Shown: positions 2,205 through 46,707 of the stretch, piece by piece
Numbering within the stretch: position 1 is the stretch's first letter
Layout of the letters: every line of letters begins with the position of its first letter
Source of the DNA: Piromyces finnis finn
Taxonomy: Eukaryota > Fungi > Neocallimastigomycota
DNA: 64,000 nt
Direction: 5' to 3'
Assembly (NCBI GenBank): GCA_002104945.1
Contig: MCFH01000069.1
Coordinates: 1-64,000, forward strand
Notes under the pieces: model-generated
Seen by the model: only the letters and a program-made list of their open reading frames with translations
What the model was told of the DNA's origin: nothing
Databases searched by the model: none
Position numbers and translations under genes: made by a program

Positions 2205-2214
2205 AAATACTATA

Positions 2215-2216
<2 letters not shown>
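2205..2216 (-). repeat. 12-bp target-site duplication (plus AAATACTATACA) between the copy 2 poly(A) and the copy 1 5' end
   Basis: Identical 12-mer at 2205-2216, 7528-7539 and 7904-7915; abuts the poly(T) at 2217. Confidence 0.8.

Positions 2217-2252
<36 letters not shown>
2217..2252 (-). other. Poly(A) tail of copy 2
   Basis: 36 consecutive T on plus, at the 3' end of the minus-strand element. Confidence 0.85.
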
Positions 2253-2255
<3 letters not shown>

Positions 2256-2477
2256 GGCATCAAATATTTTAAACTTTATTATTAATTTAATTAAAATTAT
2301 AATACATGTAATATAAAAATTAAAATAAAATAAAAATAAAAAAAATATGTTTAAATAAACACAAATGAATAAAAATTGGGTATAATGTATTCTAGTAATT
2401 TTAATTAAAGTAAGAAAGCCACTATCATACTAAAGTATAATAATTGTATTTGACTTCCAATGGGACACCGAGCCAAA

Positions 2478-2511
2478 GATCAAAATTTTGTCATGGAACA
2501 AAATTATGATC
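2478..2511 (-). promoter_or_regulatory. Stem-loop spanning the ORF stop codon (candidate 3' RT-recognition element)
   Basis: gatca/tgatc plus aattttgt/acaaaatt give 13 bp with one mismatch and a 6-nt loop; the stop codon (2491-2493) lies at the loop edge. Confidence 0.45.
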
Positions 2512-5500
2512 TCCATTGGTTGCGCTGGCCCTCCTGGCCTGTCTTACTGTTTCTTCAGCATTGACGCTCTTGGATGTTGCTTCAAACCTTTTGAACATTG
2601 TCCATTGCTGGCCAATAGCAAAAGGCATGATTTTGGTTAGAAGTTCCGCGGTTACCGTCAAGAATGGTGTTCCTTCGTTAGTACCAGATTGAATCTGACG
2701 CTTACAAAGTTCTTTCCATTCCCTTGAATTGTAATTAATATTGTTAAAACTTCTTCCCCCAAGAAGGAATTTAAATATTTTACTGCACACACTAGAATAA
2801 TCATACACATTAATATTCACCGGATTATTAGAACTATTACTATCATTAACTAAATTACTATCTAAATTAGAATTATTATCTTCACTATTGCTATCATTAC
2901 TAATATTATTATTTCTATTATTGTTATTATTACTATTGTTACTATTACTATTGTTACTATTACTATTGTTATTACTACTATTGTTACTATTACTATTAAT
3001 GTTATTACTATCTCTACTGATATTATCAATTTCATTATTATTGATAGGACTATTGGAATTACGTTGACTGAAAAAATTTAATAGCTGGTCTATAGAATCA
3101 TAATGTTTAATACGGATATCTCTAAATGTTGGACAATCTAATAACCAATGTTTAATACTTTGATCTCCACACTTGCAACATGGACAGTAGTTAGGACAAA
3201 CTGGATCAACAAATTTGGCAGCTTTGGCAACTCTAGCATCCAACTTATATCCGCTTCTTGCTTTCAATAGCCAGTAGAAGCCATAGGCAAACTCTGGGTA
3301 CTCATAACATAATTTAATAAAATCTTTAGTTTCAATAAATTTATTATCATCATAATATTGCGCTTTGATTGAATTCCCTTTGAGATCTTTCCAATAAAAG
3401 TTTTTAACTGCTTTAACATCTCCATGTTTCTTTAATTTTTTATCAAGTGTCCTACTTGATTTGCACCACGTGTATTTTCTAAATTTAGGAATGTAATTGA
3501 CAAGGTGTGAGATAATACAATTTGAGTTTTTCCATTTGTTAAAACATCTAACCTGAGCTAACGCACATTTGGCTGACAATGGAGGAATATTCAAATCTTT
3601 TGAAATAGAGTATAAAGATATAAACGATACAGCTTTATGAACTCCGGCAACCCATCGTATTCCTTTGTTAACATGCTTCTGAGCAATCCTAGACCTAGCT
3701 TTGTTGGATCCAAGTAATGGTGCAAAGTATGAAACTCTGCTAATCACTTGTGAGTTAAGTACTAGTTTTTTGAAAGGAATAGGAATATTAGGATTTCTTA
3801 AGAATTTACTGACTGAGAAAAGCCCTTTCAAAACCTTGTTATTAAGAGCTTTAATTACTGGTTTAAGGGACAGATTCTTATCAAATGGAACACCAAGATA
3901 AGTATAACAATCAGTAGTTGGAATGGGTTGTCCTGCTAAGTAAAATGTTGGATCTCTCTTGTTCTGATTTTCTATTGATTCAGGACGAATCACCATCGTT
4001 GAACATTTCTGGATACCAAATTCCATTTCATTATACAATGCCCATTCATTAACTCTTCTAAGCATCTTTTTTAAGCATCCTCTTGTTGGAGCACAAATAA
4101 CTATATCATCTGCAAAAAGTCCACCACAGCATCGAGTGTCACCTAAACTGACTCCTAGATCTTCGCACTCTCTAAATATATCATTAATAAAGAGATTAAA
4201 GAGAATAGGAGAAAGAGGGCAACCTTGACGGACTCCTTTCTTCACATCAAAAGATTTCGAGAATTGTCCATCTAATTTGACATTAGCCTTAGATGTTAAA
4301 TATAAATTTTTGATAAATTGTAGACTCTTACCTCGGATTCCTAAACAATCTAATTTATGGAGAATATTACCGATTGGGACTGAATCGTATGCTTTCCTGA
4401 GATCTAAAAAGGCCAAATATGTCTCTTTATTATCTAATTGACGTCTACGGCATATTTCTTGGATTGAAATGAAAAGACTAATACTTTCTTCCTTTTTTCG
4501 AAAACCAAATTGTTCAGGTCTAATGAAATTATTCTTTAAACCATATTCTGAGATTCTAGTGGTGACAATTTTGGAAATCAACTTAATACCATTATTGATA
4601 AGTGATATACCTCGATAGTTATCACAATCTGTCAAATCACCCTTCTTAGGAATAGAAACAATACTGGATTCATTCCATGAGTTGGGGAAATCTCCATCCC
4701 AAATACGGTAGAATAATTTAAGAATAAAATTTAAACCATGAGCATCATTATCTGAAGTGGTATTACCAGAAGAATTATTATCTGTAGCATTATTAGAATC
4801 ATTACTTGATGGAACTAATGCTTTGTAAAATTCAATTGGAATACCATCCGGACCTGATGCTTTATAATTTGGAGTAGTGAGGATAGCTGACTTGACTTCA
4901 TCAATACTAATATCTTGGTTGATATCCCACTCATCAAGCATAGGAAGTGAAAAACGTTTATTCGTTGGTTCTTCATACCAATGCTCCAAATCAAGACTTA
5001 CACCACTTGGGTCTGATGCAAGATTTTCGAAATGATCATGCCACACATCTAGTTGTTCTTCTGTAGCAACAACTAATTCTCCATTTTTATTTTTAATTGG
5101 TTGAGCAATAAAGAAAGAATCTTTTCCTATTTTTGCAGTTTTCTTGATCCATTTCCAGGCCTTCTTAGGATTATGACTCTTCATATACTCACATCCTGTT
5201 TTAATCCAATGAAGATATTCTTGCTTCCTAAATTCATTACATCTTTTGTGGATGTAATCAATGAGTTTACGGTAGATTTTAATTCTTTTAATAAATTCAT
5301 CTATATCATAAATTCTTTCTTTTTTAAATCTCTTATACAACTTCATTTTGATTTTTTGAAGATTAAAAATTTGTTGTGAAATATGAAATGAAGACTTTAT
5401 AACATTATTTGCTGAGGTAATACTGAGCTCGTCTGCAATTGAAAAAGCAGTTGAAGTAAACTCTTTGGAAAGTTCATCTGTAGAAACATTAGGATCGTTG

Positions 5501-7014
5501 AATTTTGCTGAAAGTATTTGGAATTTATTATGACTGAGAATAGATTCCTTTTCCTCAATACATTTTAATCTATTCCATTTCAGAATTTTCTTAGGAACAT
5601 TAAAGTCATTAGAAAAATCTTCCATAGGAATAATTTTACCATTAATAAGAAGTGGCTTATGGTCTGATACAGGATAAAAATTATTTATAAATGATCCTGA
5701 GTGAATAAGATCTTTCATCTTCGAATTGATAAGAGCATGGTCAATGTCGGAAGATTGATCACCTCGAGTCCAAGAGATAGTCGACCCTCTAAGCGGAAGA
5801 ATTTCCCAATCTCCTAATCCATTAGTTGATAACCAGTTGGATAATTTTACTTTAGACATATTAAAATCACCAACAAGAATCGATGGATGGGATGAATGAG
5901 TTTGTAACCACAAGCGAACTTCTAACTTTGCATGATCAACATAGATGTTGTGATGACTATGAGGCATATAAACATTTCCAATCGAGCATTTGAATCTATT
6001 CCAGAGACTAAAAGTATAAATAGAAATAATATACTTTCCAGAGAAGTTTTCAAGTGAGGCTTGACATGAATTGTGAAAACCTAAATATAAACCTCTCATT
6101 CCCGGAACTGATTCGTCAGCTTTCTTGAAAAAGTGTCTATAGTTTCGCAAAGTAACACGACAAGGATAATCTGTATTCGATCCAGAACCATTACCAGTTT
6201 CTTGGAAACATAAAAATAATGGTTTGAAAATAGCTGTGAAATAGCTAATACTATCTCTCTTTTCGTGATTCCACCCATTGGTGTTCCAACTAAGACAAAA
6301 AGAAAAGTTATCAGGCTTGTTGGATGAGGAAGAATCGTTGCTATTATTATTATTATTAAAGTCATCGTTATTAATGGATGATGCATCAGAGGAATAAGTA
6401 GAACTATTACTAGATGGCTGTGAAACTGAAGAACTATCAACTATTGAACTGTTATCAGAGTTGATAGAGCTATTAGAATTAATTGTTGAATGTTGAGATT
6501 GAAATTGTGTTTGCTGTAGATCTGGAATATTTTCATGATTGGAAACTTGTTGAAGATCTTGTTGAAGATCTAGTTGAAGATCGGATTGTTGATGAGATTG
6601 TTGAACTGATTGTTGAAATGATTGTTGAATAGAATGTTGATGTTTATTAGAAACTAAAATTTTACGTTTGAGAGTGGAAAAAGTGTATTTGTGATTCCTT
6701 CTACTACGAGCTGAAAAGGAAATTGAGGTAACTGAAAGTTTCTTCTTTAACATGTGTAAGATTTTAATACAATCTTTCGATGAACCATGAACCTTGACTA
6801 AGAAAAAGTGATCATTGAAAGTCTGAAAATATTTAACACTAATAACTGAATTAAATTTATCTTCTAGAATAACCTCGAGTTTTTCCCATAGCATATTTAC
6901 TGACCATGATCGAATACCACGGATAAAGAAGGAGCGAATATCATCTAAGGGGATACCATAAGACCGGGTACCACGTCTGATATAATTCTTGTCTTTAATA
7001 TAAAGGACTGACAT
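2491..7014 (-). CDS. Retrotransposon polyprotein: N-terminal RRM-like region, APE (EEP) endonuclease, reverse transcriptase, C-terminal CCHC zinc knuckle
   Basis: EN motifs LSWNTNG, LCFQETG, LVGDFN, SDHKP; RT motifs GPDGIP, NYRGISL, QFGFR, FLDLRKAYDSV, GVRQGCPLSPILFNLFI, LFADD, YLGV; knuckle CPCCKCGDQSIKHWLLDC; no RNase H motifs recognised. Confidence 0.97.
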   Translation of the reverse strand: MSVLYIKDKNYIRRGTRSYGIPLDDIRSFFIRGIRSWSVNMLWEKLEVILEDKFNSVISVKYFQTFNDHFFLVKVHGSSKDCIKILHMLKKKLSVTSISFSARSRRNHKYTFSTLKRKILVSNKHQHSIQQSFQQSVQQSHQQSDLQLDLQQDLQQVSNHENIPDLQQTQFQSQHSTINSNSSINSDNSSIVDSSSVSQPSSNSSTYSSDASSINNDDFNNNNNSNDSSSSNKPDNFSFCLSWNTNGWNHEKRDSISYFTAIFKPLFLCFQETGNGSGSNTDYPCRVTLRNYRHFFKKADESVPGMRGLYLGFHNSCQASLENFSGKYIISIYTFSLWNRFKCSIGNVYMPHSHHNIYVDHAKLEVRLWLQTHSSHPSILVGDFNMSKVKLSNWLSTNGLGDWEILPLRGSTISWTRGDQSSDIDHALINSKMKDLIHSGSFINNFYPVSDHKPLLINGKIIPMEDFSNDFNVPKKILKWNRLKCIEEKESILSHNKFQILSAKFNDPNVSTDELSKEFTSTAFSIADELSITSANNVIKSSFHISQQIFNLQKIKMKLYKRFKKERIYDIDEFIKRIKIYRKLIDYIHKRCNEFRKQEYLHWIKTGCEYMKSHNPKKAWKWIKKTAKIGKDSFFIAQPIKNKNGELVVATEEQLDVWHDHFENLASDPSGVSLDLEHWYEEPTNKRFSLPMLDEWDINQDISIDEVKSAILTTPNYKASGPDGIPIEFYKALVPSSNDSNNATDNNSSGNTTSDNDAHGLNFILKLFYRIWDGDFPNSWNESSIVSIPKKGDLTDCDNYRGISLINNGIKLISKIVTTRISEYGLKNNFIRPEQFGFRKKEESISLFISIQEICRRRQLDNKETYLAFLDLRKAYDSVPIGNILHKLDCLGIRGKSLQFIKNLYLTSKANVKLDGQFSKSFDVKKGVRQGCPLSPILFNLFINDIFRECEDLGVSLGDTRCCGGLFADDIVICAPTRGCLKKMLRRVNEWALYNEMEFGIQKCSTMVIRPESIENQNKRDPTFYLAGQPIPTTDCYTYLGVPFDKNLSLKPVIKALNNKVLKGLFSVSKFLRNPNIPIPFKKLVLNSQVISRVSYFAPLLGSNKARSRIAQKHVNKGIRWVAGVHKAVSFISLYSISKDLNIPPLSAKCALAQVRCFNKWKNSNCIISHLVNYIPKFRKYTWCKSSRTLDKKLKKHGDVKAVKNFYWKDLKGNSIKAQYYDDNKFIETKDFIKLCYEYPEFAYGFYWLLKARSGYKLDARVAKAAKFVDPVCPNYCPCCKCGDQSIKHWLLDCPTFRDIRIKHYDSIDQLLNFFSQRNSNSPINNNEIDNISRDSNNINSNSNNSSNNNSNSNNSNSNNSNNNNNRNNNISNDSNSEDNNSNLDSNLVNDSNSSNNPVNINVYDYSSVCSKIFKFLLGGRSFNNINYNSREWKELCKRQIQSGTNEGTPFLTVTAELLTKIMPFAIGQQWTMFKRFEATSKSVNAEETVRQARRASATNGDHNFVP

Positions 7015-7527
7015 GATAATAAATTCTAATTAAAAATATTGAATATAAAATAAATACTAATAAAAATTATAAATATAACGTATATGGAAAAAAAATCTGT
7101 CTCTCTCTCTCTTCTTAAAAGTACTGGATAGTACAAAAATTGTTACGATGCTTTGTTTAAAGTTTCTTTTTTTTGAATTCTAGTTGTAAATTTTCTTTAA
7201 AAATTCTAGTTTTGGTTTGTTGTTAGTAAATTCGAATCGCTTTTTGACACTAAACTTGTTTGACTTTACTTTTCATTAAATATTTAAATTGGTAAAAAAT
7301 TTGAATCAAGAATGTCGACACCAGAAAGCTTGTGGATAGTATTTTTACATGATGTAGAGTGAATCAGTCTCTTACAAGAAACAATACAACAATAGCTACA
7401 TGAATATAAAAATACAATGCAAATGCTAAAGTTGACTACATTGGATTCTTACAAGAGAAGAGTAGTACTACATGAATACATGAATAAAAGAAAAAATACA
7501 GCAACAAAATGTATTACTCTTCTAATT

Positions 7528-7539
7528 AAATACTATACA
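7528..7539 (-). repeat. 12-bp target-site duplication at the 5' junction of copy 2
   Basis: AAATACTATACA; similarity to the array unit at 7904 onward stops exactly at the left edge of this 12-mer. Confidence 0.8.
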
Positions 7540-7549
7540 AACTTACCTG
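7540..7549 (-). promoter_or_regulatory. Consensus 5' splice donor CAG|GTAAGT (second copy at 7916-7925)
   Basis: Plus aacttacctg reads caggtaagtt on minus; directly adjacent to the 12-mer; use as a donor is unproven. Confidence 0.45.
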
Positions 7550-8250
7550 AATATCAAACATTCAACTTATTCATCAAATACTTAATTCGATGAATAAAAT
7601 GTTTTTTAATCGCTCAGTACCATGAGCTTAATCCTAATAATTTTCCCTTAAAGACTAACCAAGCATCCATTGCGCAATGCTTGGATTTAATTCTTTCTAC
7701 TCTCTCAGTACCATGAGCATGAGTAGACCCCCTTGATAAACTCCATTATTAAATAAATGAAGGCACGTTCCTAAGAGGGCACCAAGCATCCATTGCGCAA
7801 TACTTGGATTTAATTCTTTCTACTCTCTCAGTACCATGAGCATGAGTAGACCCCCTTGAGAAACTACATTTATTAAATAAATGAAGGCACGTTCCCAAGA
7901 GGGAAATACTATACAAACTTACCTGAATATCAAACATTCACTTATTCATCAAATACTTAAATTTGATGAATAAAATGTTTTTTAATCGCTCAGTACCATG
8001 AGCTTAGTCCTAATAATTTTCCCTTGAAGACTAACCAAGCATCCATTGCGCAATGCTTGGATTTAATTCTTTCTACTCTCTCAGTACCATGAGCATGAGT
8101 AGACCCCCTTGAGAAATTACATTTATTAAATAAATGAAGGCACATTCCTAAGAGGGCACCAAGCATCCATTGCGCAATACTTGGATTTAATTCTTTCTAC
8201 TCTCTCAGTACCATGAGCATGAGTAGACCCCCTTGAGAAACTACATTTAT
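7540..8250 (-). ncRNA. Putative structured RNA of unknown class encoded by the array
   Basis: Several stems per unit; A-C mismatches on plus become G-U pairs on minus; possible GUGCC/GGUAC loop pairing. No family assigned. Confidence 0.4.
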
Positions 8251-8252
8251 AG

Positions 8253-8438
8253 ATAACTATATCATCTGCAAAAAGTCCACCACAAATGTAATTGACAAAG
8301 TATGATATAATACAATTTGAAATCACCATCATTGAACATTTCTGGATACCAAATTCATATGGAACATGAGACTACGATATTAGCCTTAAATAAAAAATTT
8401 TGATGAATTGTAAACTCTTACCTCGGATTCCTAAACAA
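8253..8438 (-). mobile_element. Mosaic of short fragments of the retrotransposon ORF
   Basis: 8253-8284 = 4097-4128 (32/32); 8285-8320 matches 3490-3525 (33/36); 8321-8356 matches 3988-4023 (35/36); 8379-8438 matches 4282-4348 (with a deletion). Confidence 0.85.

Positions 8439-45087: not shown

Positions 45088-46707
<1,620 letters not shown>

Follow-up and report, generated by a model that had tools for sequence, protein, structure and literature searches.

The mouse L1 elements of types A, Tf and Gf are L1-clade LINEs with tandem 5′ monomers. Other LINEs with an AP endonuclease are site-specific, such as R1, TRAS/SART and the Tx1-clade elements Keno, Mutsu and Dewa, and HDV-like self-cleaving ribozymes are found at the 5′ ends of the LINEs R2 and L1Tc. 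The Zepp LINE of Chlorella nests in its own copies. To our knowledge, the mobile elements of the Neocallimastigomycota have barely been described. In Cryptococcus, the LINE Cnl1 forms arrays of 5–80 kb (bioRxiv 10.1101/2021.08.11.455996).

Here we analyze 64,000 nucleotides of the anaerobic fungus Piromyces finnis (contig MCFH01000069.1, positions 1 to 64,000; hereafter, the window), where two copies of one LINE family, El1 and El2, lie head to tail on the minus strand. Probably, El2 is a full-length copy nested, with a 12-bp target-site duplication (TSD), in the leader of El1, an older copy with the same orientation; this would be ordinary nesting. The locus documents a very abundant L1-like family that is intact and transcribed and has a structured tandem-monomer leader, in the Neocallimastigomycota.

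Similar to the mouse-type L1, El2 combines a predicted AP endonuclease, a reverse transcriptase, and a C-terminal Cys/His motif with a poly(A) tail, a TSD of about 12 bp, and tandem 5′ monomers that go with expression. Unlike mouse-type L1, it lacks a separate ORF1 and has one ORF, extended N-terminally by 240 aa; its monomers are 123 nt long and form sense-specific hairpins, and the first nucleotide of a monomer appears to be where the family RNA begins. As in Zepp and Cnl1, a single-family LINE array, head-to-tail or nested, arises by insertion into earlier copies; however, the arrays of these elements are (sub)telomeric, whereas nothing telomeric was seen here, and El2 entered at the leader/UTR boundary, not at a telomere repeat or within poly(A). 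The locus resembles R1, TRAS/SART, and the Tx1-clade elements in its precise junctions, in the shortness of its TSD, and in being co-transcribed with the upstream sequence across the 5′ junction, but the leader of the element itself, and not a host gene, serves as the "target", and other sites are also used.

Organization of the stacked locus

The 12-mer TGTATAGTATTT has exactly three exact matches in the window, all on the minus strand: at 7904–7915, at 7528–7539, and at 2205–2216. If one mismatch is allowed, there are eight matches versus 2.5 expected, a number reached in none of 100 shuffles. The first and the last exact copies flank El2 (7915–7904 and 2216–2205) and form its 12-bp TSD; that the 12-mer has the geometry of a TSD had been seen in an earlier note on this DNA, with 7528–7539 as the partner of 2205–2216. 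The middle one is internal to El2 and marks the boundary between its leader and its UTR. The minus strand opens with AATTAGAAG both at 2204 (running to 1) and at 7527 (running to 5325). The identity of the two copies begins at the 12-mer, and they are 98.3% alike over approximately 2.2 kb (blastn). After the copy at 7904–7915 the minus strand continues with CCCTCTTGGG. The earlier description of the sequence, with its three exact 12-mers, a 36-A tail, and two closely alike copies, is correct, and the origin of the head-to-tail pair by insertion at the 12-mer is supported.

Read along the minus strand, El2 probably extends from CCC at 7903 through 2217. Its 5′ end (7658–7903) consists of two tandem structured monomers of 123 nt, B1 (7903–7781) and B2 (7780–7658), followed by a degenerate third monomer, A (7540–7657), which contains a 20-bp hairpin and ends with CAGGTAAGTT. 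Downstream of the internal 12-mer are a 513-nt 5′ UTR (7015–7527), whose core, which includes TGATTCACTC, is kept in all relatives in the alignment, an intact ORF of 1507 aa (2491–7014), and the 3′ UTR (2490–2253) with the 36-nt poly(A) (2252–2217, a T run on the plus strand; 2217–2490 in total). The older copy El1 is split by the insertion. Its leader (7916–8250, 97% identical to that of El2) comprises a truncated monomer B′ (8250–8158), a monomer B (8156–8034), and a degenerate A′ (8033–7916), and its remainder (1–2204) contains the UTR and the first ~560 codons and leaves the window. What had been described as an array is a pair of 376-bp units, 97% alike, each composed of B (123), B (123), A (118), and the 12-mer, the outer unit being cut at 8250; Tandem Repeats Finder gave no report for this array.

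Under the nesting explanation, a full-length family RNA starting at the CCC of its first monomer would have been reverse-transcribed into the leader/UTR boundary of the older copy, and nicks staggered by 12 bp would have duplicated TGTATAGTATTT on both sides. The resulting order on the minus strand would be 5′ extras, El1 leader, TSD, El2 leader-UTR-ORF-poly(A), TSD, and El1 UTR-ORF, so that the adjoining leaders of El1 and El2 mimic a 376-bp tandem array. The site at 7904–7915, taken in the earlier note for an element-free target, is indeed an exact 12-mer; in this reading it represents the TSD copy on the upstream side and not an empty host target.

The two copies stem from different sub-lineages. 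El1 differs from El2 by four 1-nt homopolymer deletions and one 12-nt insertion, and the two copies also differ at sites polymorphic family-wide, El1 carrying the allele of other copies at 13 of 15 such sites. El1 and El2 are thus separate retrotransposition products, neither a local nor an assembly duplicate. A local tandem duplication was rejected, as the copies differ at lineage-diagnostic sites. That two different copies were misjoined by the assembly at shared sequence is hardly credible: such an error is favored by the size of the family and by the absence of a read record spanning the whole tandem, but the junction combines a clean poly(A) with an exact TSD, and the alleles differ between its two sides.

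The truncated first monomer of El1 adjoins a patchwork (8253–8438, minus strand; blastn and tblastn) of four ORF pieces of 32–53 nt, which correspond to El2 sense positions 3400–3431, 4003–4038, 3505–3540, and 3180–3232 with 92–100% identity. The ORF orientation is kept and the order is scrambled; these pieces are likely template-switch extras at the El1 5′ junction. Similar patchworks occur in two relatives: in L007, a 125-nt 3′-end piece lies immediately ahead of CCCC, and in L001 a patchwork follows poly(A). Such template-switch-like structures could also point to a single-event concatemer, formed by the reverse transcriptase jumping from El1 RNA to the poly(A) of El2 RNA and then to leader and ORF pieces. 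We regard this as very improbable, since two unrelated switch points would have to yield an identical 12-nt stretch on both sides by chance (about 2e-6 at fixed register), whereas a TSD needs no coincidence.

The encoded protein and its relatives

The El2 ORF matches PF03372 (Exo_endo_phos, AP endonuclease; 2.1e-7, 31.4 bits versus a cut-off of 24.5), with GDFN and SDH motifs in the translation of this domain, as well as RVT_1 (1.3e-35) and, weakly, zf-RVT. The approximately 240-aa N-terminus precedes the endonuclease, the reverse transcriptase, and the Cys/His motif, and its RRM-like likeness is a weak lead with scores below 0.9. No ORF was found in the 513-nt UTR, and the element has a single ORF. 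The best solved relative of the protein is the human L1 ORF2p (5e-33, compared with 2e-17 for R2). By its domains and its best solved relative, the element can be assigned to the L1-like non-LTR retrotransposons with an AP endonuclease; of the LINE hallmarks, the reverse transcriptase, the N-terminal AP endonuclease, the 36-A tail, and the exact 12-bp TSD are all present at El2. Protein searches of public collections yielded no relative exceeding 71% identity, or 69% when the full-length protein was the query, and scans of viral contigs found no other copies of the family.

The leader and its counterparts

The array is the LINE's own 5′ leader, composed of two B monomers and a degenerate A and followed by the UTR; it is no multicopy gene of the host. 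In other anaerobic fungi, relatives with protein identity of 45–69% open with a comparable CCC-initiated module of three hairpins (L001:111, L002:359, L003:181, L004:85, L005:1139). The module is richer in G/C than its surroundings, and its flanks are unrelated; for instance, in L005 it sits behind an actin gene. L003 and L007 belong to one family, with an identical start nucleotide and differing upstream DNA. In L009 of Anaeromyces robustus, a 12-bp TSD, TTATATTATATT, in plain AT-rich DNA encloses two tandem monomers of 157 nt, which agree at 154 of 157 positions. This places the monomers within the element and shows that a TSD of 12 bp also occurs in a relative. For the metagenomic relatives L001, L002, and L007, no convincing TSD was found, and in locus L008 of Piromyces sp. 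E2 a stretch of N takes the place of the leader.

The 5′ monomers of El2 are predicted to fold more stably in the sense orientation (−43.4 kcal/mol, z −5.1) than in the antisense (−29, z −3.1). In B, L002, L001, and L003, a 5′-terminal stem formed from the first CCC(C) is followed by a bipartite hairpin with the loop UGGUAC or UGGUGC, and the loop UGCGCAAU is common to B and L002, the stems being different. Thus a CCC-initiated three-hairpin module heads related elements, with sequence homology significant only for L001: the primary-sequence similarity between B or A and the modules of relatives is weak, reaching significance there (z 3.4), and local alignments to relatives across the point between the 12-mer and AATTAGAAG are not significant (z 0.8–1.7). 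MAFFT and RNAalifold gave no consensus fold for nine modules, whose divergence is too great for alignment. When a metagenome was scanned with the start motif of B, one chance match appeared, in GC-rich bacterial DNA.

Rfam searches of both strands returned no family at gathering thresholds. A U1 snRNA reading was considered for the plus strand, which carries ACTTACCTG, the complement of the splice-donor-like CAGGTAAGT, and an AUUGCGC hairpin loop; it was rejected, Rfam being empty at gathering thresholds and at E up to 10. Cmscan with E up to 10 on both strands found no ribozyme family at the 5′ end, arguing against a known self-cleaving ribozyme, and hand-threading of the leader onto an HDV-like fold did not fit.

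Since the array is the leader of the element itself, the locus is most simply read as an ordinary nested insertion, with no new site-specific element involved. The earlier view of an independent multicopy target, used in the manner of R1 or the Tx1-clade elements, is abandoned: comparable modules head related LINEs, in L009 inside the TSD, and the supposed target is a part of the element's 5′ end, an outcome that the earlier note itself had listed as speaking against its model. This removes the false lead of a site-specific LINE with a new host target in the anaerobic fungi.

Read depth, transcripts, and insertion sites

Read runs of the same organism were used for DNA depth (X1 and X2) and for RNA (X5 and X6), with the poly(A)/12-mer junction (2150–2353) masked as a repeat in the comparison. 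The abundance of the family in reads is on the order of a thousand copy-equivalents, which makes chance nesting likely. DNA depth falls about 10-fold within ~10 nt upstream of the 12-mer: in X1 it is 26.6k–32k at 7631 and 7925 versus 436k at 7335, and in X2 it is 189 versus 1360 across the same step. Monomer A has approximately 0.06–0.14 of the DNA depth of the UTR (7–16 times rarer), and the DNA depth of B is close to that of the UTR. RNA depth shows no step at the 12-mer (2012 versus 1582 in X5, 777 versus 777 in X6), and RNA contigs run unbroken from the UTR across the 12-mer into A and B (7221–7607 and 7168–7709). Hence most UTR-bearing copies lack monomer A and leader-bearing copies supply the RNA, which does not match the picture of a plain B-B-A leader heading each copy. 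As about one copy in ten has A and essentially all RNA has it, these data suggest that the leader acts as a promoter; this contrast between DNA and RNA at monomer A is the part worth following.

The reads also revealed a second insertion of the family into its own copies. In X1, position 7903 (+TTC) is joined to ORF position 4899, and in X5 and X6 poly(T)+AACTGC follows 4908, indicating a full-length copy that starts at CCC and lies in the ORF of another copy with a 10-bp TSD, AGTATTGATG. Among the joints listed, others also break at 7903/7904 and none at 7527/7528, and thus CCC at 7903 is a more likely start of the element than AATTAGAAG at 7527, as formerly assumed. Strict site specificity does not hold either, given this second copy and the occurrence of relatives in unrelated AT-rich DNA.

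These data bear on the model of the earlier note, a host tandem array with a 12-bp site at whose regenerated copies elements starting at AATTAGAAG stack. Although the 12-mer is exact at three places, the TSD geometry would also fit 7528–7539 as a partner, and the array is high-copy in reads, this model is highly unlikely. The low DNA depth of A means that most copies are not preceded by it, the full-length copy starting at CCC lies in an ORF, neither strand contains an Rfam family, and modules of a comparable kind stand at the 5′ ends of related LINEs whose flanks are unrelated, in L009 within the TSD.

The leader/UTR boundary may be a preferred landing site, and the step in DNA depth at the 12-mer hints at recurrent use. 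One family insertion is seen here and one at another position. If the leader is a promoter, head-to-tail stacking may reflect a real landing preference. In its strong form, self-targeting would proceed by repeated landings at this boundary, the cDNA joining the 12-nt overhang via the RNA's own 12-mer; most new copies would lack a leader, chains would grow at the leader-proximal end, and El2 would start at the 12-mer or at AATTAGAAG, both leader units being the resident pad. This agrees with the tenfold drop of DNA depth just upstream of the 12-mer that RNA depth does not follow, and with the leader-proximal El2 being intact and the distal El1 frameshifted. However, every frameshift of El1 is a homopolymer deletion of 1 nt, which a sequencing error may have produced, and a single junction of this type is seen here. 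Moreover, non-homologous insertion of a full-length copy predicts what is found, two elements with two leader units; the scheme leaves the excess of B unaccounted for, and at least one family insertion is elsewhere (ORF 4899–4908). We therefore consider the strong form improbable.

A combined scheme is somewhat less doubtful, though still tentative. The 12-mer boundary would be a preferred landing pad, with new copies placed directly downstream of a resident leader and usually losing their own leader by 12-nt homology; chains would grow promoter-proximally, only the newest, leader-adjacent copy would be transcribed, and occasional full-length insertions elsewhere would found new pads.

One point against the nesting reading is that El1 and El2 would both have an A-type leader, which is odd should such leaders be rare.

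Arrangement and Origin of the Two Copies

The minus strand of the window (G+C content 21.8%) carries two head-to-tail copies of an L1-like LINE: El2, which is full-length, and El1, which runs off the window and is 98% identical to El2 from a shared 12-mer onwards. The window has exactly three copies of the 12-mer, TGTATAGTATTT, all on the minus strand (2205-2216, 7528-7539, and 7904-7915), and a 36-nt poly(A) (2217-2252, T on the plus strand) stands between the complete upstream El2 and El1. In all these respects the description in the earlier note was accurate. El2 contains a single intact ORF of 1507 aa (7014..2491) encoding AP endonuclease and reverse transcriptase domains plus a Cys/His motif. 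The best solved relative of its product is human L1 ORF2p (5e-33; R2, 2e-17), and the nearest proteins are those of the Neocallimastigomycota Orpinomyces, Neocallimastix, Anaeromyces, and Piromyces sp. E2. For residues 1-125 (6640-7014), language-model comparison pointed only weakly to RRM-like domains (scores 0.73-0.82), and this N-terminal part may, on such predictions, take the place of an RNA-binding domain of the ORF1 type. A low-complexity, Asn/Ser-rich stretch at 46203-46310, matching an ORF segment of El2 (sense positions 4517-4624) at 83%, is probably simple sequence rather than an element copy.

The simplest reading of the pair is a nested insertion of El2 into the leader/UTR boundary of El1. 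The target site duplication (TSD) and the insertional origin of the pair, as earlier proposed, are supported, the 12-mer flanking El2 at 7915-7904 and 2216-2205. El2 would be a full-length unit (7903→2217) within this 12-bp TSD, and El1 would comprise 8250-7904 plus 2204-1. The seemingly element-free 12-mer at 7904-7915 would be the upstream TSD copy, that at 7528-7539 would be El2's own, and the apparent 376-bp array would be two leaders side by side. A single-event concatemer formed via template jumping would require two unrelated switch points to have left identical 12-nt stretches (~2e-6 at fixed register). Of 15 family-wide polymorphic sites, 13 distinguish El1 from El2, and at each of these El1 has the allele of other copies. 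The two are independent insertions rather than products of a local or assembly duplication. The frame of El1 is broken by four 1-nt deletions (257, 347, 789, and 1198), all in A or T homopolymer runs. These may be sequencing (long-read consensus) errors rather than decay, and therefore it is the nesting logic by itself that makes El1 the older copy. A self-nesting arrangement of this kind is known for Zepp. Another known case is that of the Cnl1 arrays (bioRxiv 10.1101/2021.08.11.455996).

The Monomeric Leader and Its Counterparts in Related Elements

From 8250 to 7528 on the minus strand, the order is B'-B-A-12-mer, then B-B-A-12-mer, where B is a structured monomer of 123 nt, B' (93 nt) is the truncated first monomer of El1, and A, a degenerate monomer, contains a 20-bp hairpin. 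An Rfam search of both strands of the array matched no family, and a candidate U1 snRNA gene on the plus strand was dropped on this ground. A splice-donor-like consensus, CAG|GTAAGTT, is found just upstream of the 12-mer (7540-7549, minus strand), and an acceptor-like TTTTTAATTAG precedes the ATG (7015-7030); the RNA contigs 7221-7607 and 7168-7709 are unspliced at these motifs.

The evidence decisive for the identity of the array came from contigs of related LINEs from other anaerobic fungi, retrieved via their proteins. In five of them, the conserved UTR core of the LINE lies 340-380 nt downstream of a module beginning CCC(C)…GG…CGT, and the DNA preceding the module start is unrelated among the five, being an actin gene in one. 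The loci L003 and L007 represent one family and have the identical start nucleotide with different DNA upstream. In Anaeromyces robustus, two tandem 157-nt monomers (L009:4140-4453, 98% alike) lie inside the 12-bp TSD that bounds the element in plain AT-rich DNA. Each of them ends …GGATATGCAGGAAATGA, resembling the end of monomer A, …GATATTCAGGTAAGTT.

Pairwise similarity of the window's leader to the modules of the relatives is weak, and MAFFT alignment of the modules, which are too diverged to align, allowed no formal covariation to be demonstrated. The predicted fold of B is much better in the sense (-43.4 kcal/mol, z -5.1) than in the antisense direction (-29, z -3.1). B and the loci L001, L002 (assembly GCA_016295205.1), and L003 share a predicted plan, a terminal stem from the first CCC followed by a bipartite hairpin with the loop UGGUAC or UGGUGC. 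The loop UGCGCAAU is identical in B (7781-7903, minus strand) and L002:427-448, with stems that differ in sequence; the UGGUAC/UGGUGC loop is likewise kept between the window's monomer and L001. As modeled, both loops are candidate protein- or RNA-binding loops.

Abundance, Insertion Sites, and Transcription

The element is extremely abundant in the organism's own reads, with a summed word depth of ~450,000 versus ~170-630 for the listed single-contig joints; this points to copy-equivalents of the order of one thousand, word depth not being a copy number. Among the listed joints, several have their breakpoint at 7903/7904, where B starts with CCC, and none at 7527/7528. One joint connects 7903 (+TTC) with ORF position 4899, and the RNA runs contain poly(T)+AACTGC behind 4908, which together indicate a full-length copy of the same family, with the CCC start, in the ORF of another copy. 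Its 10-bp TSD is AGTATTGATG; thus the family inserts at other sites too. Given this copy and the unrelated flanks of the relatives' modules, the data do not support the earlier proposal that the element is site-specific and has a new host target. They leave a new and very abundant family of L1-like elements, self-nested and headed by a structured monomeric leader.

Monomer A (7540-7657) is ~7-16 times rarer than the UTR (7015-7527) in two DNA runs, whereas the two are equally deep in two RNA runs. At 7631 in A and 7335 in the UTR, depths are 26.6k (32k at 7925) and 436k in DNA run X1, 189 and 1360 in DNA run X2, 2012 and 1582 in RNA run X5, and 777 at both in RNA run X6. Hence most genomic copies are alike up to approximately the 12-mer and continue without A. 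Nearly all transcripts seem to come from leader-bearing, A-carrying copies, and the DNA/RNA contrast in A supports a putative role of the leader as promoter. RNA contigs continue without a break from the UTR across the 12-mer and on into A and B. The DNA depth of B is about that of the UTR; its excess could stem from partial monomers stacked at 5' ends or from monomers common to other families. The depth step is compatible with the 12-mer boundary being a recurrent junction, which may act as a landing pad for new copies.

Directly upstream of B', at 8253-8438, lie four fragments of 32-53 nt from the ORF of the element itself, all in the same orientation but with their order shuffled, a patchwork that fits serial template-switch extras at the 5' junction of El1. 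Such mosaics of pieces from an element's own RNA seem to be frequent in this group of LINEs. In A. robustus (L007:8301-8427, MCFG01000096), a 125-nt piece of the same family's 3' end stands directly before the CCCC start, and at L001:5290-5479 an inverted 3'-UTR fragment and a reverse transcriptase fragment lie downstream of the poly(A).
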